From positions 124,001 to 188,000 of the IMG/VR virus record IMGVR_UViG_3300023174_002543: 64,000 bases of DNA; one strand, given 5' to 3'. Below the pieces are notes generated by a model. It had not been told where the DNA came from. It worked only from the letters and a program-made list of their open reading frames with translations, and made no database searches. Within the stretch, counting starts at the first letter, position 1; every line of letters begins with the position of its first letter. A program made the position numbers and the translations under genes. This document shows, one piece after another, positions 2 through 18,551 of this stretch.

Positions 2-3000
2 ACAGTTACAAATAATAATGTGATATTATCAACGTATACCAATCCGTATACAACAATGAAGTTGCCATTCTTATTAAGTGCTCAAAATGGATATGGTATC
101 AATGCCGGCACCGTAGTAAGAGATAATAGTATATTTAACACTTCATTACAAAGTACCAGCACTAGTTATGTAACATATATGGCTGCAGTAAGTCCTTTTG
201 GAGTGACCCCCACTCTACTAGTTGGTCAATCAGCCATGCAACGTGATGAAAGTATCAACAGCCTAGTTCCACAAACAATTACCACAACAGCCACAATAAT
301 GCCTTATGTAACACCATTCAGTGGTAATGCAGTTGCATTTAACGGCAGTACAAGTTATATTACTGGTACTAACTTATACAACAGTTTGGGCGGGGACTTC
401 ACAATTGAATTCTTTATGATGGCAGGTCCACAAACTGCTACAGTCGGTGGATTACTGTTAGGCAGAAACATAAGCTGGTCTACTACAAATAATAATTATT
501 ATATCATGTGTAGTTCACCCGGTGGAGTTGGGAAAAACTCATTACAAACTATACAAATTTATAACCCGCTTATTAGTATAACTTCACCTGTGTATTTAGG
601 ATTAACCTCGGTTTGTGATAGCAAATGGCATCATATTGCTATTGTAAGAATTAATGGTATTGTAAAAATATACATCGATGGAGTATTAGATACAAGTCCG
701 TTTAGTAGCTTTGCGAATACGGGTATTTGGGACTATAGCAATTATACTATTGGTAGTAATCCAAATGACGCTGGGTCAACAGTAGCCCAATTAGCATACA
801 ACGGTATGTTAAGTAACTTGCGTATTATTAATGGTACCGGTATTTACACAGGCACGTTCACCCCTCCTACAAATAACTTAACAACATCACAATCTAGTAG
901 AACAAATGTTGTTCAATATACATCAACAACACCAAGTTCAACAGGTTATAGTTTGCAATTTAATTCAGCGACTGGTAGTTATCTAACTACAACCTATTCC
1001 CCTGTACTAAGTTTAGGAACAAATGACTATACGATTGAGTTCTGGCACTTCTTATCAGGTAAATCAGCAGCAAATCAACCTTGTTTGTTCAGTAATGCTA
1101 ATAGTTCTAGTGCTGGCGTTTTAAATATGTATGCCGGACATGCTAGTGCCAATGTACTAAAATATCAACTTGCATTTAACACTCAGTCGGTAATAGCTAC
1201 TTATATAACCATGCAAAGTGTATCAAATATCATCTATGGCAAGTGGACACATATTGCATTGGTAAGAAGATCAGGGGTTGTGTATCTATATATTAATGGT
1301 ACACTTGATTCTACTAGCGGTTTAGGTAATTATTCTGTATACAGTTCTCAATGGTACATAGGTAATGATGTGACAAATTCAGCTTTAGGATATATTTCTG
1401 GCTTCATCAGCAACTTCCGTGTCACAAACGGTCTAGCAGTTTATACCGGTAACTTTACAGTACCAACTAGTGCATTAACAACAACACAAAGTTCAGGTAC
1501 AAACATTGCTGCAATAACCAATACAAGTCTGGCTAATGGTGGTGCAATATCTATTGTAGCCAGTGGTTCACAATATATAAATACCACCATGGTATTAACA
1601 ACTGCAACCACTAACATGACAGTTGAGGCTTGGGTAAATTTCACTTTATTCCCAACGTCAAATACTTGGATAGGTGGCACTGCAACTATTTTTAGTACAA
1701 GCGGTAATAGTTATTCAAGCGGTATACATTTTGTATTAGGTTCAACTAATATATATGTTGTAATAACAAATACTGTATACGGTGGTTATGCACACAACAT
1801 GGTTGCTGGAACTTGGTATCATCTTGCGTATGTTATAAATAACGGGGTCGTTACATTCTTTATAAATGGTATTTCTGTGGGTAGTATATCAGGTATCCCT
1901 GTTACTTTTGGAGCACCTAGTTATTCTGTAATAGGTGCATCTGATACCAGCGGATCATATGGTATCGGTAGTATTGGTGGCGGTAGCGTTGGGTACATTA
2001 GTAACCTAAGAGTATTAAAAGCAACTGCATTATATACCGGTAACTTTGTACCAAGCACCAGCCCACTAACTAACACCCAAAGTGCAGTAACTAATATCAG
2101 TGCAATCACAGGCACAAATACAAGTTTATTGTTACAAAGTTCTGCTACAACTGATGCAAGCGCAAATGCATTTACACTAACAGTTGGCGGAAGCCCAAGC
2201 GTTAATACTTCTGTGTTCCCCAAGTTTACAGTGACAAATGCATCTAGTGCATACTTTCAATCAAACGGAATTACTACTCAGTATGCATCACTAAGAGCTC
2301 CTACTGCTACTAGTATTCTTGGCACAGGTACATTTACAGTTGAATGCTGGATATATCCTATACCATTCTTGGCAGCTACATCAGCATATCAAGTTATTAT
2401 AGATAATGATACGGCTTCAGGATTAAATGCATTTAGTATAAATCCAAATGGTACTATATTTTACGGTCTAACTCTTAGTACAGTATTAGGAACAACCTCA
2501 TCGCTATACACAGTAAAATTTAATGCTTGGAATCATTTAGCATTGGTGAGAAATGTTACACCGGCGTCAAGCATAGCAACCATATATATTAATGGTGTAG
2601 CAGGATATGCCGGTACAGATACTACAAGTTATAACGGCGGTATTGTTCGTATAGGTACTCAGCGTTCAGGCATTACATTCCCTTATACAGGCTATATATC
2701 TAATCTAAGAATTGTTAATGGTGTTGCTGTTTATACAAGTAATTTTACAACTCCTACAGCACCTTTAACTGTTACTCAAAGTGCAAACATTAACGGTAAC
2801 CCAAGTACTGCACTAGCAATTAATACATATGCAGGCAATTTTAACGGTACTTCACAATATCTAACAGTTCCTACTAGTGCAACTGCAAACGTGATACCAT
2901 TGATATTAGGTAATAGTAATTTTACTATTGAATGTTGGATTTATCCATTAACCTCAAGTCAAAGTACATGGTTTATTGATTTTAGACCTACTATAGAGGG

Positions 3001-6000
3001 TGCATATCCTGCATTAGGATTAACTAGTGGTACAATTTATTATTTTGTTAATAGTGCAACTAAAATCACTGGGTCAGTTGCTGGCTTGTATCAATGGACT
3101 CATGTAGCAGTAGTAAGAAACACCAATATAACTACACTATATATTAATGGCGCCGGTGTAGGTTCATTCACTGATACTACAACATATCTGCTTAATCAAA
3201 ATGTAAGCCCTCCGGTCATAGGTACATATGGTGTTACACGTGGTGGTACTGGATTTGTTGGCTATATAAGCAACGTGCGTATTGTTAATGGTACATCGGT
3301 ATATAATAGTGCGTTTACACCCCCTACTACTCAGTTAACTGCTACTCAAAATGCAGGAACAAATATCAGTCCAATTGGCTCACTAATAACTACCAATGGA
3401 TATTATAGTAATTTCTTCAATGGTTCTACAAGTCAATATTTGTCAGTGCCAGGGCAAGCCTTAGTATTTGGTACCCTACCATTTACAGTTGAAGTTTGGA
3501 TTTATACAACATCTCAAAACGGACCGGCAATTATCGATAACATGATAAGCACATCAGGTTCATATTCTATTGGACAGTGGTACTTTGCACTTACTACTAC
3601 TACAGGGTATCCAGTATTTTATTATGCAACAGGTGTTTCTACTCTTGTTACAATTACTTCTGCCATAAGTGCTCCTATCGGTCAATGGACTCATCTTGCT
3701 GCAGTAAGAACGGGCACAGGTACAAATGGATTCACTATTTACGTTAACGGTCTTGTAGGTGTAACTACAACAATAAGTGCTTCAATAGGTGCATTTAATA
3801 CAACCACTTCAAATACAATTGGGTTGATGACAAGTCCTAGAAATGCACCCGTAGCAGGATTTCTATCTAACGTAAGGGTAACAACTGGTTTAGGCGTATA
3901 TACAGGAGTATTCAGCCCGCAATTCACACCACTGACTAACACTCAAAGTATAGTAACTAGTACACAAAGTAGTTTACTAGCATTGCGAACAACTTCTATC
4001 ATTGATGAAAGTACGAATGCATTTACATTAACATCAGTTGGCTCACCCGCAACAAGTGGTAGCGTAACACCGTTCGTAACAACTAATGGATACAGTGTAT
4101 TGTTTACACCTAATCAATTCTTGGCTGCAGCCCCATTGAGTAGTATATATCAAGTGTTTACCGGGGATTTTACTGTTGAATTCTGGGCATACTGTACAAA
4201 TTCTTCAACTGTTAATTGTTTGTTTATGAATTACAATGGAACAAGTGATATCAGTTTCTACATGGGTTTTACCCCCGTTGCAGGGCAACTCAGTTATGGT
4301 GGCTATAATACATACACTACATTAAGTGCAGCAGCCACATCTGTATTGTTCAACGTATGGACACACATTGCATATGTTAGAATTAATAGTGTCGAAACTG
4401 TGTATTTTAACGGTGTCTCTGTATCAACAAGTACACGTACTTTAAACTTTGCCACCGGTACTTTATATGTTGGTATTAATCCAGCAATTGGTCAATACTT
4501 CAGCGGCTACATGAGTAATTTTAGAGTTATTAAAGGACTCGGTGTTTATACTGGTAACTTTACACCTTCTACTACCCCATTAACTACAACGCAAAGTTCA
4601 AGTACAAACATTCAAGCAATTACAGGTACGGCACCTGCAAACGGTAATAGTGTTAATTTTAATGGTAGTTCATATTTGAATACTACTGGTAATAGTCAAC
4701 TTGAATTTGGTAATAATACATATACGATTGAATTTTGGTTCTATCTTACTTCAGTATCAGTATATCAACATCTATATGATTTAAGAGGTTCCGGTCCCAA
4801 TAACATAGCATCTTATGTTTATTGCCAAACTAATGGCTCTATATATTATGGCATTGGTAGTAATACGACAGTAATACCAGGATCAAGTACTGCTGTTGCT
4901 GTACAAACATGGTATCATCTAGCGATTGTAAGAACGAGCCAATCAACCAATGGCGTTACTATGTACTTAAACGGTATAAATGTTGGTGTTGGTACTGATG
5001 CTAATACTCATTTACAGTACGGATTACGTTTAGGTGCAGCTAGTCCCTCAGCCACAGCGTTTGCTACTGGTTACATGAGTAACTTTAGAATATTGATTGA
5101 TACTGCTTTGTATACAAGTAATTTTGCAATGCCAAATAATACATTAACTGCAATAACAAACACTAGAGTACTAGCATTACAAAATTCAACCACCACGGAT
5201 GCAAGTGCAAATAATTTTACATTTACTGCAACCGGTACAGTAACATTAACTACAACAATATCACCGTATATTTATACTACTAATTGGTTGATAATGCAAA
5301 ATTCACCTACTACTGATGCAAGTATTTATAATTCAACCCCTAGCAATTCAGGCGGAGCCGTTATTTCTATAAGGTCTCCCTTTATAGTAACTAACGGATA
5401 CAGTACACAGTTTACAGGTAGCAGCCAATATATTCAAGCGCCAAGCGATGCAGCGTTTACATTTGGTACAAATGACTTTACAATTGAAGGTTGGATATAT
5501 CTAAGTACCAATACATCAACTGGTACACTTTATGATGGTAGAACTGCAACTAACTCACTTAGCCCGGTAATTTATATTGATTCCAATCGAGTATACTATG
5601 CAGTTGGTAGTACTATTGTTATTACTGGAAGTTTTATAGCGTCTGCAACTTGGTATCATATTGCAATATCTCGTTTTTCAGGTAGTACAAGTTTATATGT
5701 AAACGGTCTACAAACAAGTAACATATATGCAGATACTAATAACTATGTAATTGGCGCACCGTATATTGGTACTGGATATAACTCAAGCAACCCATTAACA
5801 GGTTATATCAGTAATATTCGTGTAGTTAAAACTGCATTGTATAATAATAGTTTTATTCAATCAACTGTACCACTAGTTGCTACAGTAGGTGGAAATATCA
5901 GTGCGATTTCGGCACTTACTGCTACTAACGGTTATTATGCTTCTGCGTTTGGCGGTGCTAACGGTCTATCAATATCAACTGTAAGTGCTATATATGCATT

Positions 6001-9000
6001 AGGAACAACATATACAATTGAGATGTGGCACTATAGAATGAGCAACACATCTGCTGGATCATTTACAAGTGCATTGATACTAGTTGGAACAACAAATCTT
6101 GGAACTGCTTGTACAGGATTCCTACTTACATACAACACCAGTGGTGTTATTAATTTCTTTGACAGTAGTAATGCCACAGTAATTAACTACGCTAATGCAA
6201 CTACTAATATACCGTTGTATACTTGGACACATATTGCTGTAGTACGAAATAGCACCACAACAGTTACATTATATGTTAACGGTGTTAGCGTTGCAACAGG
6301 AACTAGTTCAGCAACTCAAGCAACTAACTCATCTGTATTCATAGGTGGTGATACTGCTAATCAAGGTAGATTTACAGGATATATAAGTAATTTACGTATT
6401 GTTAAAGGTGTAGCAGTATATACTGGTGCATTTACAACACCCACTGGTCCTCTATCTACTATTCAATCTAGTGGTACAAATATTTCTGCATTAGTTGGAA
6501 CAGAAACAAGTTTATTAACATGCCGAAGTTCAACTATTGTGGACAACAGTACAAACAGTGCCACAAACACTATTACAAATACCGGTATAGTTGGTACAGC
6601 AATTGCTATTGGATTGTTTGGTAATAACTCCGGTGTAGTATTATTAACCAGTCAAAGTTCAACTATAGTTGATAATAGTGTTTATGCAGCTCCAATGACA
6701 AATACTGGATCAGTTCTCATTCAGCCAGTAATTAACTTGTATGCAAATAAGGGCGCAACACAATTATTAGCACTACAGACTAATAATAATGTAACATTAG
6801 ATACCAGTATCAATGCATATGCTCTTGTAAATAATGGTACTACAACTACATTGCCTGCAGCAGGATTATTTGGTACAGCAGTCGTTAATTTGTTAGCACT
6901 ACAATCATCATTGACTACTGATGCCGGTTATTATGCAACTACACTAACACCAAGTGGATTGGTACAGTTTGATGCACTATCACCTTATGCAGCACTCAAC
7001 GGTAATAGTATATTCTTTAATGGTGATAACCAATATATTCAGGCACCAAGCAATGCTGCGTTCACATTCGGCACAGGTGACTTTACTATTGAAGGTTGGA
7101 TATATCTAATTGGTAATACTAAAACGGGTACATTATATGACGGTAGAACTGGTTTAACTACAGTAAGTCCGCAAGTCTATATAAACAATAATATTGTATA
7201 CTACGCAGTTGCCAATGTTAATCGTATTACCGGACCTACAATAAATATTGCTACCTGGTATCATATTGCAGTAGTAAGAATTTCAGGCATCACAGAGTTA
7301 TTTGTTAATGGTAATCAATTTGGTATCGATTATATTGATACTAATAACTATGTTATTGGATCCCCTCTAATTGGTCAAGGTTATAATAATAGTAATTCGC
7401 TAATAGGATACATCAGTAATGTACGTGTAGTTAAAGGAACCGGAGTATATGTAAGTCGATTTATTACACCTATAACAACACTAACAAATACACAGGCCAG
7501 TAGCACAAATACAAAAGCATTAGTTGCATTACCTACTTCAGGTTATTACAGTGGTTATTTTGGTTCAACTACACAAGCATATTGTGTCGTTACTACACCA
7601 ACAACTATGCTTACACTATCAGGTAGTGCATTTACAATTGAAGCATGGGTATACTTTACTGATTGGGGAAATGTTGTTAGTCTTGTGTATGGTGCAGGAT
7701 TCTTTAGTACTGGAAACAGTGCCGGCTTTAACATTGTCTTTGCAGGCACAGTTTCTTCATATACCGGTGTAACAATATATGCAGCAAGTGGTACGGTAAA
7801 CAACTTATTTCCCTATGCTTTCCAATTAGGCACATGGTATCATGTTGCGGTTACAAGAACCATTAATGGATTATACAACGCATTTGTCAATGGAACAAAT
7901 ATAGGAAATTATACTAGTACTAGTACTTGGGTAGATCCTACAAGTCAAAGCATAGCACTTAGTTATTCGCCAAGTGCCTATTATTTCTCTGGCTTTATAA
8001 GTAATCTTAGAATTACAATGGGTCAAGCAATATATATCGGTACTTATGCATCATTTACACCAAGTACTAATATATTGACAACCACACAAAGTGCAAATAC
8101 AAATGGTAGTCCAAGTCTTGCAATTGCACAGTCAACTAGTGCCGGTTATTATAATTTAGGGTTCGTTGGTAATGCTTCACAATACTTGACATTATCTGGT
8201 GCAGGACATGTATTTGGTATAAACCCATTCACTATTGAATGTTGGGTATATGCAATAAGTTTTGCCACCAATATGCCAATAATTGATAACTTTACTAGTA
8301 ATACAGCAGGTTCATATATTATTGGTAGTTGGAGATTATATTTGAGTGCTACCAGCGGTGTACCTACTTTTATATACGCAACTAGTGTTTCTGCAACTAG
8401 TGCGTTTAGTACATTGATTGGGCCCTCACTAAAATCATGGACACATATTGCAGTGGTAAGAACTAGTGCAAGTGTTGGTGGATTTAATATATATATCAAC
8501 GGAGTATCAGGTCAAGCAAATACCCTAAGCCAATCGATTGGTGCAGTCAACAGTAATACACAAATTGGTGCAGGTAAGGATGGTTACCCATTCAATGGAT
8601 ATATTACCAATATAAGATTAACAAATGGCGTGGCATTATATACTAATTTGTTTGTACCACAAACTACACCTTTCACTGCAATACAAACGGCACAAACTCC
8701 TGTTATAAGTTCATTGTTGGCATTACAAAACTCTGTTACAACTGACGCAAGTGCGAATACATTTACATTAACTGCTACAGGTAGTCCAACTGTTAGTTCA
8801 ACCGTTGTTCCTTATATGCCAGTTACTAACGGATATAGTGTTTACTTTAATGGTTCTAGTTATGTATCATTAACCACGCAAACTGCTTTTGGACTAGGTA
8901 CAGGGGACTTTACAATTGAAGTATGGATATATCCTACTCTAAATCCTGCTAACGGTATAGGTGCAATTGCTGACTTTAGGACAGGTGCCACTGCAACTGC

Positions 9001-12000
9001 TACATCAATAAGAATTAATAATGCTAGACAACTACTGTTTTATGACGGCCCACAAAATAATGATGCTATATTTACCAATACTACTGTTGCTCTCAATCAA
9101 TGGAGTCATATTGCTTATACAAGAATAGGTAATTTAGTTACTGGATACATCAACGGTGTAGTTGCTGGATCAGTGGCAGTAACTAGTAATTTAGGATCAA
9201 CTCAACCAATATGGATTGGTAATAATCAAACTGCTGGTTATAATTTCAATGGTTACATGAGTAATTTCCGCCTAGTAAAGGGTCTAGCAGTATACACCGG
9301 TGCATTTACTCCTCCAACAAGTCCATTAGCAACTACACAAAGTTCAGGTACAAATATTGTTGCACTACCGGGTGGTAGTACTACATTCTATAATTCATTC
9401 AACGGTACTAGTCAATATTTAACTACACCAAATAATACTGCATTCTCATTGAGTGGTGGTAGTTATACAATTGAATTATGGGCATATTGGAATAACATAT
9501 CCGGCGAGCAAGTAATCATTGAACGCTTTACTGCTGCCAGCGGTCCGGGATATACACTATATAAAACCGGTGGACACCAAATTCAATTGTATGGAAGCGC
9601 CACGGTAGTAACCAGCACTAGTACACTAGTAGCCGGAACTTGGTATCATATTGCAATATCTTATAATGGAACAAACACACGTGTATTCATTAATGGAACA
9701 CAAGAAGCTACTGCCACTTTAAACATCACAGACTCAGCTTCTCCACTAGTTATAGGTTCTCGTAATAGCGGAGCAAGTGCTTTCTTCAATGGATACATTT
9801 CCAATATAAGAATAGTAAAAGGTGTTGCAGTTTATACCGGTAACTTTACAGTACCAACTGCCCCATTAACTGCTACGCAATCTAGTGGTACAAACATCAG
9901 TGCTATTACTGCAGGTCAAACTGTATTACTAACTTGCCAAAGTTCACTCATTGTTGATAATAGTGCATCGTTGGTGACATTCACAAATCCGCTTGGTGTG
10001 ACAACTACACCTACATCATTGACACCTGTCTATGTACAATTGTTAATGTTACAAAATTCAGTGAATAATGATGCAAGTGTTAATAGTTTTAATGCAGGTA
10101 TTACCGGTACTCCAACAGTTAACACTACTAACATGACATATATGCCGTTCGTTAATACTAACGGACGTAGTGTACGCTTTACAGGTAGTACTCAGTATAT
10201 CAACGCACCAAGTAATGCGGTATATACATTTGGTACAGGTGACTTTACTATTGAAGGTTATATATACTTGGCTAGCGGCACTAGTGGCACATTGTTTGAT
10301 AACAGAACCGGCGCAACAACTGTTAGCCCACAAATTTATATAACTGCAAGTACCATTAATTATGCAGTATCTGGTACAAGCGTTATAGTAAGCCCAACTA
10401 TATTCTCTAGCACATGGTATCATGTTGCCGTAGTAAGAATATCAGGCGTTACTATACTATATGTTAATGGTATACAAGCAGGTGTTTCATATACAGATAG
10501 TAATGATTATGTAATTGGTAGTCCATTCATTGGCACAGGTTTTGGCAGTAGTAATCCATTGAATGGATATATTAGTAACTTGCGAGTAGTCAACGGCACT
10601 GGATTGTATACTAATACGTTTGTTGTTCCTACTATACCATTAACTGCAAATGCAGTAAGTAGTGTTATAACTAATCTACCCGCACCAATAACTAGTAATG
10701 GATATTATGCTACTGCATATTCAGGATTAACAAGTCAATATCTATCAGTACCTGGTACACCGTTTGTATTCAGTACTAATGCATTTACAGTTGAATGCTG
10801 GGTTTACATAAATTCATTAGCCGCACAACAAACACTAGTTGATAATTTCGTAACCGGACCTAGTGGATCGTTCACGCCAAATCAATGGCAACTCTATATT
10901 ACAACTAGTGGTACAGTTGCCTTCAACTATGCAACCAATGCATCTACAGTATTGACTCCAACAACTACAACTACGGTAAGTCTTGGCGTATGGACACATA
11001 TTGCAGTAGTTAGAACAAGTACAAGTACAAATGGATTTGTAATTTATATCAATGGTATTGCAGGTGTAATTGGTACAGTAAGTTTTGGATTAGGTGTTAA
11101 CGTAACAAGTAGTATAGGTATACAAACTTATAGTAAAACATTACCTATGACTGGCTTTATAAGTAATTTAAGAATTACTAACTTGGCAGTTTATACAGGT
11201 ACGTTTACTCCACAAACTTCCCCATTATCGTTAACTCAAGTAGGTGGTAGTTCAACTAACGCAATTACCGGTACTCAAACATCGTTATTAGTATTACAGA
11301 ATACAGTTACAACTGATGCAAGTACAAATAATTTAACATTAACCGCAACTGGTAATCCAGTTATCTCACTAGTTATATCGCCGTACCCAACATCAGTAGC
11401 TAATAATTATAGTGCAAGTTTTAACGGAACTACAACGCAATATCTAATTACATCGGCACAAACAAGTTCTACATATTTTGGTACAGGTGATTTTACTATT
11501 GAAGCATGGGTGTATTTAACATCAACCCCCTCACAGAATGCATCAATTACTTGCGTTAACGCTGATTGGCAAATAAGTTGGAACGTAAGTGGTTTCTGTT
11601 TCATGCCTGACGGGTCTGTTAGAAAAGTCAATACAAATAACTTAGCAGCCATATCAAATAATACATGGTATCATGTGGCATTTACTAGACAATCAAATAC
11701 TCTTAAATCATATTTAAATGGTGCCTTGGCAATGACGGATACAGATTCTGGAAATTATACTAGTTTAAACGGTATTCGCATTGGTGCAAATAGAAGTAAC
11801 AACGTAGGATTCCCCGGATATATCAATAATTTACGTATAATTAAAGGTACTGTGGTCTATACTGGTAACTTTGCTGTACCTACAACTGCATTAGGAATTA
11901 TACAAAATTCAAGTACTAACATTTCTGCATTAACTGGCAGTGAAACAATATTATTATCTGTACAATCTAGTACAATTACTGATAATTCTCTTACTGGCTT

Positions 12001-14410
12001 TACTATAACTAATAATAGTGCTGTTACAACGACCAATAGTGTACGACCTAGTCTTTTAATAGCAGTTACTAATGGAAGTAGTGTATACTTCACGGGTAGT
12101 ACTCGATATGTAAGAGCACCAAGTAACGCAGTATTTACATTTGGTACAGGTGACTTTACTATTGAAGGTTGGGTATACTTAAATGCTGCCGCAACCAGTG
12201 GTACATTATATGATGGTAGAACAGGTGCTTCAACCACAAGCCCTCAAATTTATATTGCATCAAATGTAGTAAATTATGCAGTTGCAGGTTCTAGCGTAAT
12301 TACTGGTGCAACATTAAGTACAATAACTTGGTATCATATTGCTGTAGTTAAAATTTCTGGTATCACTAAGCTATATGTTAATGGCACACAATCAGGTAGT
12401 ACATATACCGATAGTAATGATTATGTAATTGGTAGTCCATTCATTGGTACAGGTTTTGGTAGTAGTAATCCATTAAATGGATTTATATCTAATCTACGTG
12501 TAGTTAAGGGCGTCGGTGTCTATCCTAATAATTTTAATACTTCTTCATTACCGTTTAATTCTACTCAAGTATCAGTGAGCGGTTCTGGTGTTAACACAAT
12601 TACGGGTACATCGGTTTCACTATTAACCGCGCAAAATGCAACTATTGTTGATAACAGTACATTTGCAGTTACCATTACAAACGTTGGTACAGTTGTTCCT
12701 GCAGTGGCATTTGGATTGTTCAATAACTCAGGTGTTTCGTTATTAACTGCACAAAATAGTACATTTGTTGATAATAGCGTTAACGGTGTTACAATTACAA
12801 ATACTGTATCACCTGCAGTGACTACTCAACAGTTATATGGGTTGTTTGGAACCAGCTTGACTACCCTATTGGCACTACAAAATAGTAACAGTCTAACTAT
12901 AGAAGCAAGTGTGAATGCCCTTGCGGTGTCAGTGAGTGGTGTAGCAATAATGGAAAAATCATTTAGTGCAATTGGCGGATATGTAGTACCTTCATTGTTA
13001 ACTGCACAATCAGGAAATACCATAGACAATAGCGTAAACTCATCAATATTCACTATTACAAATAATTATGCTTTATACCAAACAACTGTAACACCATATG
13101 GTGCATTAACACCGGTAGCATTATTAACTGCACAGGGTAACGTGTTACTAAGTGACGCATCTGGGTACCACTCAAATGTCAATCCAGTAGTTGCTGCATC
13201 CATAATGTCGAATACGGCTAACGTAACTATTAACACAACGCATGGGCCATTCAATAATGATGTTCCATTATTAACATTCCAAAATGCATTGGTAACCGAC
13301 TATGGCAATAACAGAACACAAATGACCACAGTTGGTTCGGGTATAGCACCAACCGATGCAAGTCCATTCAGTAGTAAATCATTGACAAGTTTCTTAGTAC
13401 CATATGGTTATAATGATATTAGTATTAGTAATACTGCAACTACGGGTAACACATATCTTCTTAATAATGCAAATATTGCATCAGCGAGCACATTACTAAA
13501 TCCGTTTGTCATCCCAACTAGTGCAGTAACTGTTTTAGCACTACAAACTAGTAATATTCTAATAGAATCTAGTATTAATAACGGAACATTTACTACTGCA
13601 AATACTACACCTACAAGCAATGCGTTTAGTCCATTCGGTACATATTATAGCAATGGAATGATTACATTGAACGTTAGTGGTACTACGTATGCCAATCTTA
13701 ATGTTACCAGTTCAACACCGGCGCCTAGCAGTACAAGTAATTATTCAATTGCAATATCATCAACTTCAAATATTGGAAATAGAGAGGTATCAGGTGGTGC
13801 TATTACTCAAGGAGCAGGATCTTTGGGATATGGATTTAGTTATGCTAATGCAAACATAGTAATTGCTGATGTTGCAAACAGTAACTTGGCAGAGTCATTT
13901 GGTAATGCTAACATAGCAACTGCAAATTATCGCATATCTTATGACGGTGCTATAACTATTAGCACTGGGTACGGATTGCCCAATGTAGGGAATCTCACAC
14001 TTAATATACTAGATAGTGCAAACATTACTTTGGATGAATCGCGGGCTAATGCAAATATAGCAAATACTAATTACTTTAAGTCCTATGACGATGTTCTTGA
14101 CAGTACAGGTTTTGGTCTACCTAATATAGGTCCAAGTAATGTAACACTATTCATTAGTAATGTAGCAGGTAGTAACTTGGCTGAAACATTAATAAGTAAT
14201 AATTTAGGTAATGCTAATTATTATCGTCAATCAGACACTATACTATCTTCTCAGGCTGTTTCAAGTTATATACCCACACCGGTTGGTGGTGTAATATTGT
14301 TAATAACATATTCATATACTGACGGTGTTCCTATTGTAGCAGCAAACGTACAAAGTGGAAGTGGAAGTGGAACATTTGCTGCCAATACACAGATTTGGAC
14401 ACAGACTTAA
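2..14410 (+). CDS. Giant LamG/concanavalin A-like repeat protein (putative tail fibre/adhesin), 5'-truncated by the window edge
   Basis: Frame is open from base 2, so the GTG at 20 is not a proven start. 19 repeats of F.G..YL...GT.DFTIE.W ... W[YT]H[IVL]A[VI]VR ... G[YF]ISN.R; extremely T/S/N/G-rich with few charged residues. Confidence 0.9.
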   Translation, partial: TVTNNNVILSTYTNPYTTMKLPFLLSAQNGYGINAGTVVRDNSIFNTSLQSTSTSYVTYMAAVSPFGVTPTLLVGQSAMQRDESINSLVPQTITTTATIMPYVTPFSGNAVAFNGSTSYITGTNLYNSLGGDFTIEFFMMAGPQTATVGGLLLGRNISWSTTNNNYYIMCSSPGGVGKNSLQTIQIYNPLISITSPVYLGLTSVCDSKWHHIAIVRINGIVKIYIDGVLDTSPFSSFANTGIWDYSNYTIGSNPNDAGSTVAQLAYNGMLSNLRIINGTGIYTGTFTPPTNNLTTSQSSRTNVVQYTSTTPSSTGYSLQFNSATGSYLTTTYSPVLSLGTNDYTIEFWHFLSGKSAANQPCLFSNANSSSAGVLNMYAGHASANVLKYQLAFNTQSVIATYITMQSVSNIIYGKWTHIALVRRSGVVYLYINGTLDSTSGLGNYSVYSSQWYIGNDVTNSALGYISGFISNFRVTNGLAVYTGNFTVPTSALTTTQSSGTNIAAITNTSLANGGAISIVASGSQYINTTMVLTTATTNMTVEAWVNFTLFPTSNTWIGGTATIFSTSGNSYSSGIHFVLGSTNIYVVITNTVYGGYAHNMVAGTWYHLAYVINNGVVTFFINGISVGSISGIPVTFGAPSYSVIGASDTSGSYGIGSIGGGSVGYISNLRVLKATALYTGNFVPSTSPLTNTQSAVTNISAITGTNTSLLLQSSATTDASANAFTLTVGGSPSVNTSVFPKFTVTNASSAYFQSNGITTQYASLRAPTATSILGTGTFTVECWIYPIPFLAATSAYQVIIDNDTASGLNAFSINPNGTIFYGLTLSTVLGTTSSLYTVKFNAWNHLALVRNVTPASSIATIYINGVAGYAGTDTTSYNGGIVRIGTQRSGITFPYTGYISNLRIVNGVAVYTSNFTTPTAPLTVTQSANINGNPSTALAINTYAGNFNGTSQYLTVPTSATANVIPLILGNSNFTIECWIYPLTSSQSTWFIDFRPTIEGAYPALGLTSGTIYYFVNSATKITGSVAGLYQWTHVAVVRNTNITTLYINGAGVGSFTDTTTYLLNQNVSPPVIGTYGVTRGGTGFVGYISNVRIVNGTSVYNSAFTPPTTQLTATQNAGTNISPIGSLITTNGYYSNFFNGSTSQYLSVPGQALVFGTLPFTVEVWIYTTSQNGPAIIDNMISTSGSYSIGQWYFALTTTTGYPVFYYATGVSTLVTITSAISAPIGQWTHLAAVRTGTGTNGFTIYVNGLVGVTTTISASIGAFNTTTSNTIGLMTSPRNAPVAGFLSNVRVTTGLGVYTGVFSPQFTPLTNTQSIVTSTQSSLLALRTTSIIDESTNAFTLTSVGSPATSGSVTPFVTTNGYSVLFTPNQFLAAAPLSSIYQVFTGDFTVEFWAYCTNSSTVNCLFMNYNGTSDISFYMGFTPVAGQLSYGGYNTYTTLSAAATSVLFNVWTHIAYVRINSVETVYFNGVSVSTSTRTLNFATGTLYVGINPAIGQYFSGYMSNFRVIKGLGVYTGNFTPSTTPLTTTQSSSTNIQAITGTAPANGNSVNFNGSSYLNTTGNSQLEFGNNTYTIEFWFYLTSVSVYQHLYDLRGSGPNNIASYVYCQTNGSIYYGIGSNTTVIPGSSTAVAVQTWYHLAIVRTSQSTNGVTMYLNGINVGVGTDANTHLQYGLRLGAASPSATAFATGYMSNFRILIDTALYTSNFAMPNNTLTAITNTRVLALQNSTTTDASANNFTFTATGTVTLTTTISPYIYTTNWLIMQNSPTTDASIYNSTPSNSGGAVISIRSPFIVTNGYSTQFTGSSQYIQAPSDAAFTFGTNDFTIEGWIYLSTNTSTGTLYDGRTATNSLSPVIYIDSNRVYYAVGSTIVITGSFIASATWYHIAISRFSGSTSLYVNGLQTSNIYADTNNYVIGAPYIGTGYNSSNPLTGYISNIRVVKTALYNNSFIQSTVPLVATVGGNISAISALTATNGYYASAFGGANGLSISTVSAIYALGTTYTIEMWHYRMSNTSAGSFTSALILVGTTNLGTACTGFLLTYNTSGVINFFDSSNATVINYANATTNIPLYTWTHIAVVRNSTTTVTLYVNGVSVATGTSSATQATNSSVFIGGDTANQGRFTGYISNLRIVKGVAVYTGAFTTPTGPLSTIQSSGTNISALVGTETSLLTCRSSTIVDNSTNSATNTITNTGIVGTAIAIGLFGNNSGVVLLTSQSSTIVDNSVYAAPMTNTGSVLIQPVINLYANKGATQLLALQTNNNVTLDTSINAYALVNNGTTTTLPAAGLFGTAVVNLLALQSSLTTDAGYYATTLTPSGLVQFDALSPYAALNGNSIFFNGDNQYIQAPSNAAFTFGTGDFTIEGWIYLIGNTKTGTLYDGRTGLTTVSPQVYINNNIVYYAVANVNRITGPTINIATWYHIAVVRISGITELFVNGNQFGIDYIDTNNYVIGSPLIGQGYNNSNSLIGYISNVRVVKGTGVYVSRFITPITTLTNTQASSTNTKALVALPTSGYYSGYFGSTTQAYCVVTTPTTMLTLSGSAFTIEAWVYFTDWGNVVSLVYGAGFFSTGNSAGFNIVFAGTVSSYTGVTIYAASGTVNNLFPYAFQLGTWYHVAVTRTINGLYNAFVNGTNIGNYTSTSTWVDPTSQSIALSYSPSAYYFSGFISNLRITMGQAIYIGTYASFTPSTNILTTTQSANTNGSPSLAIAQSTSAGYYNLGFVGNASQYLTLSGAGHVFGINPFTIECWVYAISFATNMPIIDNFTSNTAGSYIIGSWRLYLSATSGVPTFIYATSVSATSAFSTLIGPSLKSWTHIAVVRTSASVGGFNIYINGVSGQANTLSQSIGAVNSNTQIGAGKDGYPFNGYITNIRLTNGVALYTNLFVPQTTPFTAIQTAQTPVISSLLALQNSVTTDASANTFTLTATGSPTVSSTVVPYMPVTNGYSVYFNGSSYVSLTTQTAFGLGTGDFTIEVWIYPTLNPANGIGAIADFRTGATATATSIRINNARQLLFYDGPQNNDAIFTNTTVALNQWSHIAYTRIGNLVTGYINGVVAGSVAVTSNLGSTQPIWIGNNQTAGYNFNGYMSNFRLVKGLAVYTGAFTPPTSPLATTQSSGTNIVALPGGSTTFYNSFNGTSQYLTTPNNTAFSLSGGSYTIELWAYWNNISGEQVIIERFTAASGPGYTLYKTGGHQIQLYGSATVVTSTSTLVAGTWYHIAISYNGTNTRVFINGTQEATATLNITDSASPLVIGSRNSGASAFFNGYISNIRIVKGVAVYTGNFTVPTAPLTATQSSGTNISAITAGQTVLLTCQSSLIVDNSASLVTFTNPLGVTTTPTSLTPVYVQLLMLQNSVNNDASVNSFNAGITGTPTVNTTNMTYMPFVNTNGRSVRFTGSTQYINAPSNAVYTFGTGDFTIEGYIYLASGTSGTLFDNRTGATTVSPQIYITASTINYAVSGTSVIVSPTIFSSTWYHVAVVRISGVTILYVNGIQAGVSYTDSNDYVIGSPFIGTGFGSSNPLNGYISNLRVVNGTGLYTNTFVVPTIPLTANAVSSVITNLPAPITSNGYYATAYSGLTSQYLSVPGTPFVFSTNAFTVECWVYINSLAAQQTLVDNFVTGPSGSFTPNQWQLYITTSGTVAFNYATNASTVLTPTTTTTVSLGVWTHIAVVRTSTSTNGFVIYINGIAGVIGTVSFGLGVNVTSSIGIQTYSKTLPMTGFISNLRITNLAVYTGTFTPQTSPLSLTQVGGSSTNAITGTQTSLLVLQNTVTTDASTNNLTLTATGNPVISLVISPYPTSVANNYSASFNGTTTQYLITSAQTSSTYFGTGDFTIEAWVYLTSTPSQNASITCVNADWQISWNVSGFCFMPDGSVRKVNTNNLAAISNNTWYHVAFTRQSNTLKSYLNGALAMTDTDSGNYTSLNGIRIGANRSNNVGFPGYINNLRIIKGTVVYTGNFAVPTTALGIIQNSSTNISALTGSETILLSVQSSTITDNSLTGFTITNNSAVTTTNSVRPSLLIAVTNGSSVYFTGSTRYVRAPSNAVFTFGTGDFTIEGWVYLNAAATSGTLYDGRTGASTTSPQIYIASNVVNYAVAGSSVITGATLSTITWYHIAVVKISGITKLYVNGTQSGSTYTDSNDYVIGSPFIGTGFGSSNPLNGFISNLRVVKGVGVYPNNFNTSSLPFNSTQVSVSGSGVNTITGTSVSLLTAQNATIVDNSTFAVTITNVGTVVPAVAFGLFNNSGVSLLTAQNSTFVDNSVNGVTITNTVSPAVTTQQLYGLFGTSLTTLLALQNSNSLTIEASVNALAVSVSGVAIMEKSFSAIGGYVVPSLLTAQSGNTIDNSVNSSIFTITNNYALYQTTVTPYGALTPVALLTAQGNVLLSDASGYHSNVNPVVAASIMSNTANVTINTTHGPFNNDVPLLTFQNALVTDYGNNRTQMTTVGSGIAPTDASPFSSKSLTSFLVPYGYNDISISNTATTGNTYLLNNANIASASTLLNPFVIPTSAVTVLALQTSNILIESSINNGTFTTANTTPTSNAFSPFGTYYSNGMITLNVSGTTYANLNVTSSTPAPSSTSNYSIAISSTSNIGNREVSGGAITQGAGSLGYGFSYANANIVIADVANSNLAESFGNANIATANYRISYDGAITISTGYGLPNVGNLTLNILDSANITLDESRANANIANTNYFKSYDDVLDSTGFGLPNIGPSNVTLFISNVAGSNLAETLISNNLGNANYYRQSDTILSSQAVSSYIPTPVGGVILLITYSYTDGVPIVAANVQSGSGSGTFAANTQIWTQT

Positions 14411-14897: not shown

Positions 14898-17231
14898 ATG
14901 AACAACATAAATGTCGTTAAGCGTAATGGAGAAACTGTTCCATTAGACATATCAAAAATTCAAAGACAAGTGGCATATGATTGCAAGGGTATAGACAACG
15001 TAAGCCCAAGTATGATAGAGATTAAATCACAAATAGAATTACACGACGGTATAAGTACTAAAACAATTGATGAACTATTGCTTAAAGCAATGGTCAATTT
15101 AATTGATGAAACGGAAAACTCAGACATTAATAATGTCAATTATCAATATGTAGCAGGACGCCAAAAAGTATCTATGCTACGTAAAGAAGTATATGGTCAA
15201 TATGAACCACCCAAACTTTATGAAATAGTTAAAAAGAATACTGAATTGGGAATGTATACGACAGAATTATTAGATTGGTATACGGAAGATGAATGGAATA
15301 TTATTGATTTGTTCATCGACCATTCCAAAGATGAAAATTACACATATGCCGCCATTGCACAATTATGCGAAAAATATCTAGTGCAAAATCGTGCCACTAG
15401 TAAAATATTCGAGACCCCTCAAGTACGTTATGCAATAGCAGCCGCCACTGCGTTCCACAATGAACCCAAAGAAAAGAGATTAAAATATGTTAAAGAATAT
15501 TACGAATGTGCCAGTGATGGCCAGTTTACTCTTGCTACTCCTGTGCTGGCCGGCCTTGGTACTACTACAAAACAATTTAGTAGTTGCGTACTTATTAGTA
15601 GTGATGATACTTTGGATAGCATCTTTGCCGCCGGTGAAATGATGGCCAAGTATGCTAGTAAACGTGCTGGCATAGGATTAGAAATAGGTCGTATTAGACC
15701 ACTTGGTGCACCTATTCGTGGCGGAGAGATTAAACATACAGGTATGATTCCATTTTTAAAGAAATGGTTTAGTGACCTACGTAGTTGCAGTCAGGGCGGA
15801 ATACGTAATGCATCATGCACAGTTACATTCCCTATCTGGCATGCACAGTTTGAAGATTTAATCGTACTAAAGAACAATCAGGGTACAGAAGAAACACGTG
15901 TACGTCAAATGGATTACAGCGTTGTAATCAATAAAATGTTCTTTAACCGTTTCAAAAACAATGAGAACATTACGTTATTTGATCCGGCTGAAGTACCTGA
16001 CTTATATGAAGCATATTATAGAGATAGTGCCGAGTTTGAAAAACTTTATAAAATGTATGAAACTAAACGTGGCATCACTAAAAAAGTGTTACCAGCAGTT
16101 GAAATATTTAAAAATGGTATACTAAAAGAACGTACCGATACGGGTCGTATCTATCTAGTATTCATTGACAACGTAATTAATCAAGGTCCGTTTGATACAA
16201 AACTTGACCCGATTTATCAGAGTAACTTATGCCAAGAAATACTATTACCTACTAAACCCTTTCAACGCATTGAAGACGAGGCAGGGCGTATTGCACTATG
16301 TACATTAGGCAGTATTAACTGGGGTGCATTTAAATCAGCCCAAGATATGCGTAAAAGTTGTAGAGTATTAGTTAGAAGTTTAAGTAATCTCCTTAGCTAT
16401 CAAGATTTCCTTTCAATACAAAGTAAATTAGCTAACTTAGACTTTGAGCCTCTTGGTGTAGGCGTTACAAATTTAGCATATTGGCATGCAAAGCGTGGAT
16501 TCAAATACGGAGAGTCAATCGCACTAAGTGAAGTTAAACGTTGGATGGAACATCAAGCATTTTACTTAACAGAAGCCAGTGTAGAATTAGCCCAAGAACG
16601 TGGTGCATGTAAACGTAGCCAACATACATTCTACGGACAGGGCATCTTCCCTTGGGAACGTAGGGCAGAGGGTGTTAATGAATTAACTGACTTTACTCCT
16701 AGTACTAATTTAGATTGGGAAACACTTCGCCAAAATCTATTGCGTTATGGTATCAGAAATGCTACGCTAATGGCTGTGGCACCGGTCGAATCCAGCTCAG
16801 TTGTGTTAAACTCCACCAACGGAATTGAAATGCCGATGGAATTGATTTCTGTGAAGGAATCAAAAGCTGGATCGTTTGTACAAGTTGTGCCAGAGTACAA
16901 ACGTTTAAAGAATCGCTATCAATTGATGTGGGATCAAAAGGATTGTATTGAATACTTAAAGACTTCGGCAGTTTTAGCAGTATACATTGACCAATCACTA
17001 AGTACTAATACGTTTTACAATCCTGCATATTTTGAAGGTGGTAAAGTTCCTGCAACATTGATTACAAAGAATTTAATGTTGGCATATAAATGGGGATTAA
17101 AAACAATTTATTACAGCCTAATCAACAAGATGGGCAGTAAAGCGGGATTAACTGAAACTGACAATGTAGTTCAGTTTCCATTACAACTTGATGAGTTGGA
17201 TGAAGAAAACTGTGAGGCATGTGTATTGTAA
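14898..17231 (+). CDS. nrdA: Ribonucleotide reductase class Ia alpha subunit with N-terminal ATP cone
   Basis: N-terminal VVKRNG ATP cone; FSSCVL, QSNLCQEI, LCTLGS, APVESSS, GLKTIYY motifs; C-terminal CEAC. Confidence 0.97.
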   Translation: MNNINVVKRNGETVPLDISKIQRQVAYDCKGIDNVSPSMIEIKSQIELHDGISTKTIDELLLKAMVNLIDETENSDINNVNYQYVAGRQKVSMLRKEVYGQYEPPKLYEIVKKNTELGMYTTELLDWYTEDEWNIIDLFIDHSKDENYTYAAIAQLCEKYLVQNRATSKIFETPQVRYAIAAATAFHNEPKEKRLKYVKEYYECASDGQFTLATPVLAGLGTTTKQFSSCVLISSDDTLDSIFAAGEMMAKYASKRAGIGLEIGRIRPLGAPIRGGEIKHTGMIPFLKKWFSDLRSCSQGGIRNASCTVTFPIWHAQFEDLIVLKNNQGTEETRVRQMDYSVVINKMFFNRFKNNENITLFDPAEVPDLYEAYYRDSAEFEKLYKMYETKRGITKKVLPAVEIFKNGILKERTDTGRIYLVFIDNVINQGPFDTKLDPIYQSNLCQEILLPTKPFQRIEDEAGRIALCTLGSINWGAFKSAQDMRKSCRVLVRSLSNLLSYQDFLSIQSKLANLDFEPLGVGVTNLAYWHAKRGFKYGESIALSEVKRWMEHQAFYLTEASVELAQERGACKRSQHTFYGQGIFPWERRAEGVNELTDFTPSTNLDWETLRQNLLRYGIRNATLMAVAPVESSSVVLNSTNGIEMPMELISVKESKAGSFVQVVPEYKRLKNRYQLMWDQKDCIEYLKTSAVLAVYIDQSLSTNTFYNPAYFEGGKVPATLITKNLMLAYKWGLKTIYYSLINKMGSKAGLTETDNVVQFPLQLDELDEENCEACVL

Positions 17232-17458
17232 TGTTAGTAGAATTTAATGATGAACTGTTAACTTTAACTAATGAAGAAAAGTTAAAAATATTATTAGCCT
17301 ATCATAATCTCCCAATGGATTGCAAGATAGATAAAGAAGATATACCTATGATTATAATGGCGCTTAATCAAGATGACGTTGAAAGTGTTAAAGTAGATGA
17401 TGAGGGCGCAATAGAAATAGAATATTCCGGAAACGAATGGCAGAATCAATATGAGTAA
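17231..17458 (+). CDS. Small acidic hypothetical protein between nrdA and nrdB
   Basis: ATG at 17231 overlaps the nrdA stop (TAATG); its end overlaps the nrdB start. Confidence 0.65.
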   Translation: MLVEFNDELLTLTNEEKLKILLAYHNLPMDCKIDKEDIPMIIMALNQDDVESVKVDDEGAIEIEYSGNEWQNQYE

Positions 17459-18551
17459 AAAACAATATAATTTAAGTAAACAGACAAATTACCTACATCG
17501 CACTATGTTTCTTGACCCAGAAGGTCCTGTAACCGTACAGCGATTTGAAGAAGTCAAGTACCCAAGACTTGCCAAATATGAAGAAACTGCACGTGGCTTC
17601 TTTTGGGTACCGGAAGAAATTAGTTTAACTAAAGATAAGATTGACCACAAAGATAGTAGCGATGCAATTAAGCATATCTTTACTAGCAACTTGTTAAGAC
17701 AAACTGCGCTTGATAGTATTCAGGGTCGTGCACCAAGTCAAGTATTCAGTCCAGTCATCAGTATCCCTGAATTAGAAGCACTAGTAAGTAACTGGAGTTT
17801 CTTTGAGACTAATATACACTCAAAATCTTACAGTCATATTATTCGTAATGTTTATGGTGTACCTAAAGAAGAATTCAATAAAATTCACGATACAAAAGAA
17901 ATAGTTGAAATGGCAAGTAACGTAGGAGACTACTATGAAAAGTTACACCAATTAAATTGCTTCAAAGAAACAGGCACAGAAGTTACTGAGAGTCACCACA
18001 TTAAAGCAATATGGATGGCATTGAATGCTAGTTATGCACTAGAAGCACTACGCTTCATGGTAAGTTTTGCAACAAGTCTTGCTATGGTAGAGAACAAGAT
18101 TTACATTGGTAACGGAAACATTATCAGTTTGATTTTACAAGACGAATTGTTGCATACAGAATGGACAGCATGGTTAATCAATAACGTAGTTAAAGATGAC
18201 CCAAGATTTGTTATTGCTAAACAGCAATGTGAACGTGAAGTTTATCAATTGTATATGGATGTTATACGTGAAGAAAAAGAATGGGCACAATACTTATTCA
18301 GTAAGGGTGTTGTAATTGGATTGAACGCTGATATACTAAGTGATTTTGTAGACTATACTGCATTTACTAGATTAAAAGATATTGGAATCAAATATAACGA
18401 GAATCATCCTAAGCATTCACCTATTCCATGGTTTAACAAACACGTAAACATTAATAAGAAACAAAGTGCATTACAAGAAACCGAATCAACTAATTATGTG
18501 GTGGGTGTAATGTCAGATAGTGTATCATATGAGGAGTTACCGACACTATGA
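17451..18551 (+). CDS. nrdB: Ribonucleotide reductase class Ia beta subunit
   Basis: FFWVPEEI; di-iron ligands LDSIQ, FETNIHSKSY (includes radical Tyr), EALRF, QDELLH; C-terminal QETE..NY. Confidence 0.97.
   Translation: MSKKQYNLSKQTNYLHRTMFLDPEGPVTVQRFEEVKYPRLAKYEETARGFFWVPEEISLTKDKIDHKDSSDAIKHIFTSNLLRQTALDSIQGRAPSQVFSPVISIPELEALVSNWSFFETNIHSKSYSHIIRNVYGVPKEEFNKIHDTKEIVEMASNVGDYYEKLHQLNCFKETGTEVTESHHIKAIWMALNASYALEALRFMVSFATSLAMVENKIYIGNGNIISLILQDELLHTEWTAWLINNVVKDDPRFVIAKQQCEREVYQLYMDVIREEKEWAQYLFSKGVVIGLNADILSDFVDYTAFTRLKDIGIKYNENHPKHSPIPWFNKHVNINKKQSALQETESTNYVVGVMSDSVSYEELPTL

Follow-up and report, generated by a model that had tools for sequence, protein, structure and literature searches.

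Matching numbers of cores and edge hairpins in giant phage LamG proteins: a candidate case of nested domain self-insertion

Core and segment balance in a giant LamG protein

The giant LamG protein that opens the window (the whole stretch of 64,000 nucleotides analysed, positions 124,001 to 188,000 of IMG/VR record IMGVR_UViG_3300023174_002543) is built from beta-sandwich cores and from a short segment with the motif LL..Q....D.S.N..T..G, and the two elements occur in closely matching numbers although they are often far apart in the chain. The best overall explanation, and one that we hold to be somewhat favoured, is a 34-domain LamG array in which the segments are hairpins that would dock on the cores as nested domain insertion. 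Nested insertion, unlike a string of independent domains, predicts this 1:1 ratio in spite of distance in the sequence, with spare segments lying after cores that have none of their own. Whether phage LamG arrays obey a bracket grammar, with one edge hairpin for each core, stacked after the cores (permuted) or before them (canonical), and with the polypeptide forming a branched, self-inserted tree of depth 6-9 with out-and-back tethers, is a wider proposition that we regard as evenly poised. A search of the literature found no description of this architecture, and a split, nested LamG array is probably a new domain architecture.

In the proposed architecture each beta-sandwich core would require one short hairpin segment, which may precede the core (the ordinary order) or follow it (circular permutation). 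Cores joined by linkers of 11-15 aa would lack a hairpin of their own, and an equal number would be supplied farther down the chain. The chain would run out along the cores and then return, adding a hairpin to each core from the last back to the first, and the resulting topology would be that of nested domain insertion.

The gene and its elements

The reading frame is open from nt 2 of the window through a stop codon at 14408-14410, giving an in-window part of 4,802 aa. The full gene was recovered on IMGVR_UViG_3300023174_002543 (24,462 nt, 8,153 aa), and its ATG start, at L084:9947, precedes the window by 10,053 nt, or 3,351 aa. The window protein has 19 stretches matching Laminin_G_3 (PF13385; E = 1.7e-270), scoring 885.7 bits against a curated Pfam cut-off of 27.6. 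With Pfam used for the cores and a segment HMM plus inspection for the segments, the window portion was found to hold 19 cores and 22 segments, the latter starting at window aa 24, 72, 709, 1325, 1723, 1762, 2171, 2214, 2255, 2297, 2905, 3309, 3347, 3762, 3984, 4207, 4247, 4289, 4332, 4374, 4423 and 4512. The full-length protein has 34 cores and 32 segments detected by HMM, a segment total that becomes 33-36 after manual curation. The linkers connecting segment-less cores are merely 11-15 aa long, and therefore a hidden segment has no space there. No family match was found for the C-terminal region of ~258 aa. The features of the window, in nucleotides, are as follows.

2..14410, plus strand: C-terminal 4,802 codons and stop of the giant gene (open frame)
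65..313, plus: segments aa 24 and 72, the last two of a three-segment run whose first member is upstream of the window
317..892, plus: LamG core 1 (core 16 of the full gene), segment directly before it
938..1489, plus: LamG core 2, segment-less, 14-aa linker
1532..2080, plus: LamG core 3, segment-less, 13-aa linker
2120..2224, plus: segment aa 709
2231..2779, plus: LamG core 4
2819..3349, plus: LamG core 5, segment-less
3389..3946, plus: LamG core 6, segment-less
3968..4072, plus: segment aa 1325
4079..4594, plus: LamG core 7
4637..5155, plus: LamG core 8, segment-less
5162..5383, plus: segments aa 1723 (spare) and 1762 (directly before core 9)
5387..5884, plus: LamG core 9
5924..6466, plus: LamG core 10, segment-less
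6506..6988, plus: four-segment run, aa 2171, 2214 and 2255 (spare) and 2297 (directly before core 11)
6995..7495, plus: LamG core 11
7535..8089, plus: LamG core 12, segment-less
8138..8686, plus: LamG core 13, segment-less
8708..8812, plus: segment aa 2905
8822..9340, plus: LamG core 14
9380..9880, plus: LamG core 15, segment-less; modelled with the next segment
9920..10138, plus: segments aa 3309 (first strand modelled into the core-15 domain by AlphaFold2) and 3347
10157..10651, plus: LamG core 16
10691..11239, plus: LamG core 17, segment-less
11279..11383, plus: segment aa 3762
11399..11905, plus: LamG core 18
11945..12049, plus: segment aa 3984
12065..12568, plus: LamG core 19, the last core
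12614..13633, plus: terminal run of seven segments (aa 4207-4544); an eighth, degenerate one may lie between aa 4423 and 4512
13634..14407, plus: C-terminal region of ~258 aa, non-LamG, with short internal repeats of its own

Predicted fold and circular permutants

An AlphaFold2 model of the segment-less core 15 together with segment aa 3309, based on an alignment of 62 rows, reached a mean pLDDT of 87.7 and a pTM of 0.87. Its fold is that of the LamG/pentraxin two-sheet jelly-roll beta-sandwich, and Foldseek matched it with a probability of 1.00 to the LamG-like module of PAPP-A, laminin LG5, agrin and pentraxins. Sequence searches of the PDB gave distant LamG matches only, the best being 4qvs (E = 1.7e-09) with an alignment that starts past the segment. 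The first strand of the segment (residues 196-200) was modelled as a beta-strand with a pLDDT of ~98 and, as there is no other long strand outside core 15, its partner must be a strand of the core. A segment that follows a segment-less core is confidently predicted to pack into the sandwich of that core, in the sense that docking is feasible and not that it wins a competition, the construct having no N-terminal hairpin and its docking site thus being vacant. Another model, covering a segment, core 19, the terminal run and the C-terminus, had a mean pLDDT of 40 from a shallow alignment of 14 whole-protein rows; the terminal segment run scored 25-45 against 50-83 for the core, a weak indication that the run, lacking partner cores, has no confident fold of its own. 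An alignment for a segment-core-core-segment construct was not used, MAFFT having split single-unit rows over both cores or skipped core 1.

One search matched ~2,000 relatives. Complete stand-alone proteins with the order segment-core (P0139 and P0161) were found alongside complete stand-alone proteins with the order core-segment (P0087, P0095, P0104, P0111 and P0119). Segment-core order was also seen in P0143 and P0170 and repeated core-segment order in P0089, P0109, P0198 and P0220, the last of which begins with 'MA', passes directly into a core and ends just past a segment. As the same two elements make complete proteins in both orders, natural circular permutants exist. The original prediction had taken the segment to be the hairpin that completes the LamG sandwich and had allowed it to follow the core, and both the two complete orders and the core-15 model bear this out. 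No violation of the 1:1 rule was met with among the small complete proteins checked, and no complete small protein with two cores followed by two segments was present among the matches listed (120 of 2,163).

Balance of cores and segments across homologs

In many relatives segment and core alternate strictly, whereas in the window protein and several relatives the cores are set apart from the segments, with tight core runs followed by segment runs, so that the two parts of a domain would be separated by other complete domains. Natural segment-core units sit between the open cores and the spare segments. Core and segment totals are equal in P0018 (16/16), P0027 (13/13), P0031 (12/12), P0033 (14/14) and P0026 (15/15). 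The match extends to single blocks, n tight cores being followed by n spare segments in the informative homologs, P0018 (7/7), P0027 (3/3 and 6/6) and P0031 (1/1 and 3/3). Under a strict count the tight cores and the spare segments of the full window protein number 14 each, in a string that never becomes negative and ends at 0, and the same count gives 11/11 in P0008, 6/6 in P0017 and 4/4 in P0043. Over 75 architectures the numbers of tight cores and spare segments were correlated with a Pearson r of 0.89, the homologs not being statistically independent. At a block that appears to correspond between proteins, as judged by the look of the architecture strings, the pairs of tight cores and spare segments are (0,0) in P0030, (2,2) in P0054, (3,3) in P0031 and (7,7) in P0018, which suggests that the two numbers change together.

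The balance is less sharp in the window's own clade, where segment detection is imperfect and the agreement is good to within ~2 (34 cores, 33-36 segments). For close homologs the automated count came out between +5 and -5, varying with the treatment of ambiguous linkers. Core-core linkers of ~52 aa were found to contain diverged segments overlooked by the first segment HMM. An impression that many homologs end in two cores without a closer was discarded, a diverged canonical hairpin being present in the last linker. Inferring segments from linker length over-counts where other inserts are present, and such proteins were set aside. A scan of metagenomes with the terminal segment run returned short segment matches only.

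Element order and bracket depth

The order first read from the window, ssCCCsCCCsCCssCCssssCCCsCCssCCsCsCsssssss (C, core; s, segment), was reproduced exactly with Pfam, the segment HMM and inspection. When each core is counted as +1 and each segment as -1, beginning after the first two segments of the window, the six depth peaks of 6 and the closing final run that had been claimed are recovered within the window, the final run ending at -1. Surplus closers had been assigned to domains upstream, and 3,351 aa with further cores do precede the window. The claim that depth is capped at 6 had to be abandoned: the full-length gene reaches 9 and close homologs 7-11, and the apparent cap arises because the window truncates the gene. 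For 34 pairs in random balanced order, the expected maximum height of the bracket string is ~9, about the same as in the full gene.

The bracket analysis of the full-length gene called for by the original prediction gave a depth that was never negative and that ended at +2 (34 cores, 32 HMM segments). By the ballot theorem a random order of 34 cores and 32 segments stays non-negative with a probability of 3/35 = 0.086, and non-negativity alone is a weak test against chance. It becomes weaker still if segments are free to pair with the core on either side, since any balanced string then permits a non-crossing pairing; the argument is then carried by totals and local blocks that balance. The strong signal is the agreement of the two numbers from homolog to homolog. 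Treating segments as closers only, as had been proposed, proved too strict, being contradicted by P0018, P0027 and P0031. In these three proteins the numbers balance only if a segment lying immediately ahead of a core acts as its ordinary N-terminal hairpin; only the spare segments then close earlier cores. The idea that Q-type segments never serve the next core was likewise rejected on the numbers of P0031 and P0018.

A mirror arrangement is found in the canonical subfamily, where stacking is confined to the first strand and takes place ahead of the cores. P0050, with 13 cores, has 3,1,0,0,2,1,0,2,2,0,2,0,0 first strands per linker (13/13), and L085, with seven cores, has 2,0,2,0,1,1,1 (7/7), as tallied by hand, a regex tally coming out too low. 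Both strings are perfectly balanced and nested. The role of the hairpin, the 1:1 numbers and the mirror grammar give partial support to the nested insertion originally put forward, whereas the depth cap and the closers-only rule do not stand. Distant spare segments would dock on open cores, presumably within one chain, and a last-in-first-out pairing is proposed from the counts and order of the elements.

Alternative explanations

It could be that each core folds by itself, with the segments serving as optional spacers, their runs forming an independent repeat or stalk domain, and no complementation at a distance. The core alone covers the Laminin_G_3 profile almost end to end (positions 1-142 of 151), and Foldseek aligns 160-180 core residues to solved LamG/pentraxin domains without the segment. 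Small strands in each run segment of the 14-row AlphaFold2 model would also suit such a stalk; the same model, however, gave the run no confident fold, and AlphaFold2 places a following segment inside its core at high confidence. Self-folding cores would also leave unexplained why n tight cores are answered by n spare segments and why totals match (16/16, 13/13 and 12/12, with 13/13 and 7/7 in the mirror arrangement), and there are complete core-segment proteins in which the segment could belong to no other core. We consider this account improbable.

A little less improbable, though still unlikely, is that one-to-one strand complementation is real but takes place between chains or in another order, as domain swapping in a multimeric fibre, where for example the open cores of one copy would be zipped up by the terminal run of its neighbour. 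Oligomers are usual among phage fibres, the number balance fits this arrangement equally well, and some intrachain pairs in the window protein would span ~3,700 residues. Exchange between chains, however, requires neither that spare segments lie directly after a core run nor that block sizes match locally (7/7, 6/6, 3/3), and in the small core-segment proteins the rule is kept within a single chain.

Comparison with known systems

Circular permutation is known in the concanavalin-A-like lectins from the comparison of concanavalin A with favin and other legume lectins. These belong to the same jelly-roll superfamily as the LamG array, have adjacent N and C termini and, like the array, present one fold with differing chain start points. 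The permutation of concanavalin A is post-translational, whereas here it is encoded in the gene, the moving piece is a hairpin of only ~35 aa and both orders are found side by side in one polypeptide. In domain insertion one domain is placed in a loop of another, giving discontinuous domains. The proposed array shares with it two pieces of one domain separated by at least one complete domain, and an inserted unit whose termini are adjacent. To our knowledge, known insertions involve one or a few levels and unlike domains, whereas here the same domain would insert into itself repeatedly and in branched fashion, to a bracket depth of 6-9 (full gene). In the chaperone-usher pili, donor-strand complementation supplies a strand in trans from the next subunit to an Ig-like fold. 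By analogy, an incomplete beta-sandwich would be completed in the array too by a strand from elsewhere, one strand per fold, but apparently in cis, to judge by the order, and in a LamG fold. Ordinary tandem Laminin_G_3 arrays of phage and bacterial surface proteins are of the same Pfam family and have the same core and tail motifs, but alternate segment and core, unlike the segregated elements of the window protein and several relatives.

Should the pairing prove real, this would be the deepest known insertion of a domain into its own copies, and a natural case of beta-strand complementation in cis across thousands of residues. Giant phage proteins of this class, which is large, common and unannotated, could then be read by the simple rule of one hairpin per core; domain callers that assume plain tandem LamG repeats overlook half of the logic in them. 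A true bracket grammar would affect both the order of folding and mechanical strength. In the permuted type no closer precedes its opener in the chain, which raises the question of co-translational folding, and it may also be asked whether double tethers give the virion a lectin brush that is stiff or withstands force. Should there be no such pairing, the equal numbers would still have to be explained in another way.

Genomic context and putative role

The array is encoded by a jumbo-phage gene on a 367-kb viral contig. A gene for a virion structural protein (phrog_5838, E = 1e-296) lies upstream on the same strand. The giant LamG array is probably virion-associated, with a putative role in multivalent glycan binding on the virion, and is a candidate tail-fibre, receptor-binding or decoration protein. 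Downstream of the giant gene lie ribonucleotide reductase genes.

Order of elements in the giant gene

In the window the giant gene keeps to a single frame, which is already open at the first bases and reaches a stop at 14408-14410; in this frame a Pfam search matched 19 Laminin_G_3 stretches (cores), each carrying the motifs F.G..YL, W.H.A.VR and G.ISN.R...YT..F..PT.PL, and no other family. Short hairpin segments (motif LL..Q....D.S) were sought with an HMM trained on clear copies, weaker copies being added by inspection, and number 22. The order of cores (C) and segments (s) is ssCCCsCCCsCCssCCssssCCCsCCssCCsCsCsssssss, identical to that of the original prediction, whose bracket arithmetic, with cores as openers and segments as closers, is also correct in the window (depth peaks at 6 six times and the final run ends at -1). 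The linker before segment-less cores is only 11-15 residues long and therefore no diverged segment can hide there.

The source of the window is a viral contig of 367,104 bp (IMGVR_UViG_3300023174_002543), and tracing it upstream placed the start codon at L084:9947, in a locus preceding the window. The whole protein has 8,153 aa, 34 cores and 32 HMM-detected segments (33-36 by manual reading of all linkers) in the order CsCCsCsCCsCsCCsCCsCCsCsCsssCCCsCCCsCCssCCssssCCCsCCssCCsCsCsssssss. Its bracket count never falls below zero and ends at +2, so that the surplus closers of the window can be assigned to upstream domains, as had been supposed. A proposed ceiling of 6 on the depth was not upheld: depth reaches 9 in the full-length protein and 7-11 in close homologs, and a random balanced bracket string of this size has an expected maximum of ~9. 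The chance that a random 34/32 order stays non-negative is 0.086 and, if a segment can serve either neighbour, any balanced string pairs without crossings, so "never negative" is not a strong test; the argument is therefore carried by the totals and the local block sizes.

In the four-segment run (window 6506-6988) segment subtypes follow one another in the same order as where the terminal run begins (12614-13100), and 'GLFG/GLFN..SG' joints occur in both, so that segment runs appear to have been duplicated as blocks. The linker before full-gene core 14 (locus L080, full-protein aa 2863-2974) is 112 aa long and contains one segment, followed by what appear to be the first ~55 aa of a core (F.G..YL ... 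GDFTIE.W.YP), then broken off; this may be the remnant of a deleted core.

Balance of cores and segments across relatives

The strongest evidence is the bookkeeping of cores and segments across relatives, of which 86 giant ones were found in a search with the whole protein; scans returned 117 loci. With diverged segments and diverged canonical hairpins included, core/segment totals in relatives are 16/16 (P0018), 15/15 (P0026), 14/14 (P0033), 13/13 (P0027 and P0065) and 12/12 (P0031); such matches are trivial for simply alternating arrays and informative for those with tight core runs. When a segment directly before a core is assigned as that core's own hairpin, P0018 has 7 segment-less cores then 7 spare segments, P0027 has 3 then 3 plus 6 then 6, and P0031 has 1 then 1 plus 3 then 3. 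A strict automated count, taking as tight a core with a linker of <=22 aa (O) and as spare an HMM segment with another segment next (c), gave the following strings.

Strict strings of five relatives
P0017: OOOcccOOOccc
P0018: OcOOOOOOOccccccc
P0031: OcOOOccc
P0043: OOccOcOc
P0032: OcOc

The same count gave 11/11 for P0008 and 14/14 for the full window protein, whose string is never negative and ends at 0, with two items misclassified in opposite directions (manual ranges 13-16 for open cores and 15-17 for spare segments). Over 75 architectures open cores and spare segments correlated with a Pearson r of 0.89 in the strict count; the homologs share ancestry, and multiplying p-values over them would make the case look too strong. 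The automated core-segment difference in close homologs varied from +5 to -5 by method; segment detection is imperfect in diverged relatives, and inferring segments from linker length gives too many wherever there are other inserts. At an apparently corresponding block of the architecture strings the numbers are (0,0) in P0030, (2,2) in P0054, (3,3) in P0031 and (7,7) in P0018, and open cores and spare segments have therefore changed in number together.

A reading of distant relatives as cores without segments was ruled out by the diverged segments in their ~52 aa linkers, and that of terminal core-core pairs without a closer by a diverged canonical hairpin inside the last linker.

Small relatives and the mirror-image subfamily

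What the segment is has been settled by small complete relatives. P0139 and P0161 (~230-250 aa) have the ordinary order of N-terminal hairpin, one core and end. In P0087, P0095, P0104, P0111 and P0119, 16-30 residues are followed by one core and one segment, the protein ending a few residues later; with only one core available to the segment, such proteins are natural circular permutants. Both orders also occur in proteins with two or three cores, repeated segment-core in 71 + 31 of 120 among the matches listed and repeated core-segment in P0089, P0109, P0198 and P0220, the last passing from "MA" at once into a core and ending just past a segment. Segment number equalled core number in every small protein checked.

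In a large family of ~440 aa proteins (P0117, P0120-P0137 and similar), a short N-terminus leads into one core and one segment after it, and then into a C-terminal domain of ~200 aa that is conserved, non-LamG and ends in '...Y..(F/Y)(K/H).R(F/V)G(Y/I/F)'; here the permuted unit serves as a module attached to another domain.

In a canonical subfamily every core keeps the second hairpin half, and the first strand (W.NVSLLL.G type) is present in 0, 1, 2 or 3 copies per linker. Counted by hand, as a regex misses some copies, first strands before the 13 cores of P0050 number 3,1,0,0,2,1,0,2,2,0,2,0,0 (sum 13), and before the 7 cores of loci L085 (7850-12562) and L092 (307-5007) 2,0,2,0,1,1,1 (sum 7). 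If strands open a bracket and cores close one, each of the two strings nests perfectly and finishes at zero; the one-per-core rule therefore also applies where the stack precedes the cores.

Structure prediction

For AlphaFold2, segment-less core 15 was taken with its tight linker in front and the aa 3309 segment behind, with no N-terminal hairpin, and modelled from 62 clean "core plus following segment" units (mean pLDDT 87.7, pTM 0.87); Foldseek placed the result among LamG and pentraxin domains. The core tail (YTGNF...PL...) is at pLDDT 94-98. In the segment, residues 196-200 form the first strand, five residues long, at ~98, and what follows is at 86-89 as far as residue 220. As there is no other long strand outside the core, we infer that the strand's predicted partner is a core strand. 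Closure from behind is thus feasible in the model and AlphaFold2's preference, in a construct without competition for the site.

Another construct (segment at aa 3984, core 19, terminal run and C-terminus; 14 alignment rows) had a mean pLDDT of 40 (core 50-83; every segment, like the tail, 25-45), and no confident independent fold of the terminal run was predicted from this shallow alignment.

Proposed folding

Each LamG sandwich would need one edge strand or hairpin beside its C-terminal tail, which may come from in front or behind because the fold has its N and C termini side by side. A closed core-plus-segment unit would again have adjacent ends, since the segment's end is the usual joining point of the core's start, and could be accommodated by an outer core at its hairpin turn, making nesting geometrically plausible. 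Tight core runs followed by equal hairpin runs would then send the chain out and zip it back. What is shown comprises the element order, the matching numbers, complete proteins of both permutations and, at the first level, a closure predicted with confidence; that closure also occurs at a distance, within one chain and in last-in-first-out order is inferred.

Such out-and-back closure within one chain is probably the overall explanation. One-to-one complementation between chains, or in another order, would share the matching totals and is unlikely. Plain beads with independent segment runs seem quite improbable: they leave the equal numbers of tight cores and spare segments unexplained, and a spacer model does not predict the mirror case.

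Circular permutation in this superfamily, domain insertion and donor-strand complementation are already known. To our knowledge repeated self-insertion of one domain type, with a one-hairpin-per-core rule and two mirror forms, has no description, and literature searches turned up none.

Genomic context and possible function

Genes around the giant gene include the following.

L084 3473-6508, same strand as the giant gene: virion structural protein, 1,011 aa (phrog_5838, E = 1e-296)
Window 14898-17231: ribonucleoside-diphosphate reductase large subunit (phrog_84, E = 3.6e-268)
Window 17451-18551: ribonucleoside-diphosphate reductase small subunit (phrog_86, E = 1.2e-106)
Window 24758-25621: methyltransferase-like gene (phrog_8156, E = 1e-31)
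Window 25623-26324: weak QueC-like match adjoining the methyltransferase-like gene (E = 2.8e-05)

Some ~3.4 kb separate the virion protein gene from the start of the giant gene downstream of it, with four ORFs without PHROG matches between, and weak tail-fibre-like matches also occur upstream of the giant gene. The reductase genes are directly downstream, so the structural module ends at the giant gene. The methyltransferase-like and QueC-like genes may relate to DNA modification. A natural guess is that the giant protein is a virion fibre or decoration binding host glycans via many lectin domains. Precomputed Pfam labels place PF07953 (clostridial neurotoxin receptor-binding N-domain family) alongside Laminin_G_3 on nearly every relative, "faint" wherever hit strength is given; we take it for a cross-match between members of the concanavalin-A-like fold and see in it no sign of toxin function.

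The last ~258 aa of the giant protein (window 13634-14407) are non-LamG, with no Pfam match and low AlphaFold2 confidence in the 14-row construct. They carry short repeats of their own with a unit of ~40 aa ('NANIA.(A/T)NY' and 'G(Y/F)GLPN(V/I)G') and could form the anchor or tip of the protein.
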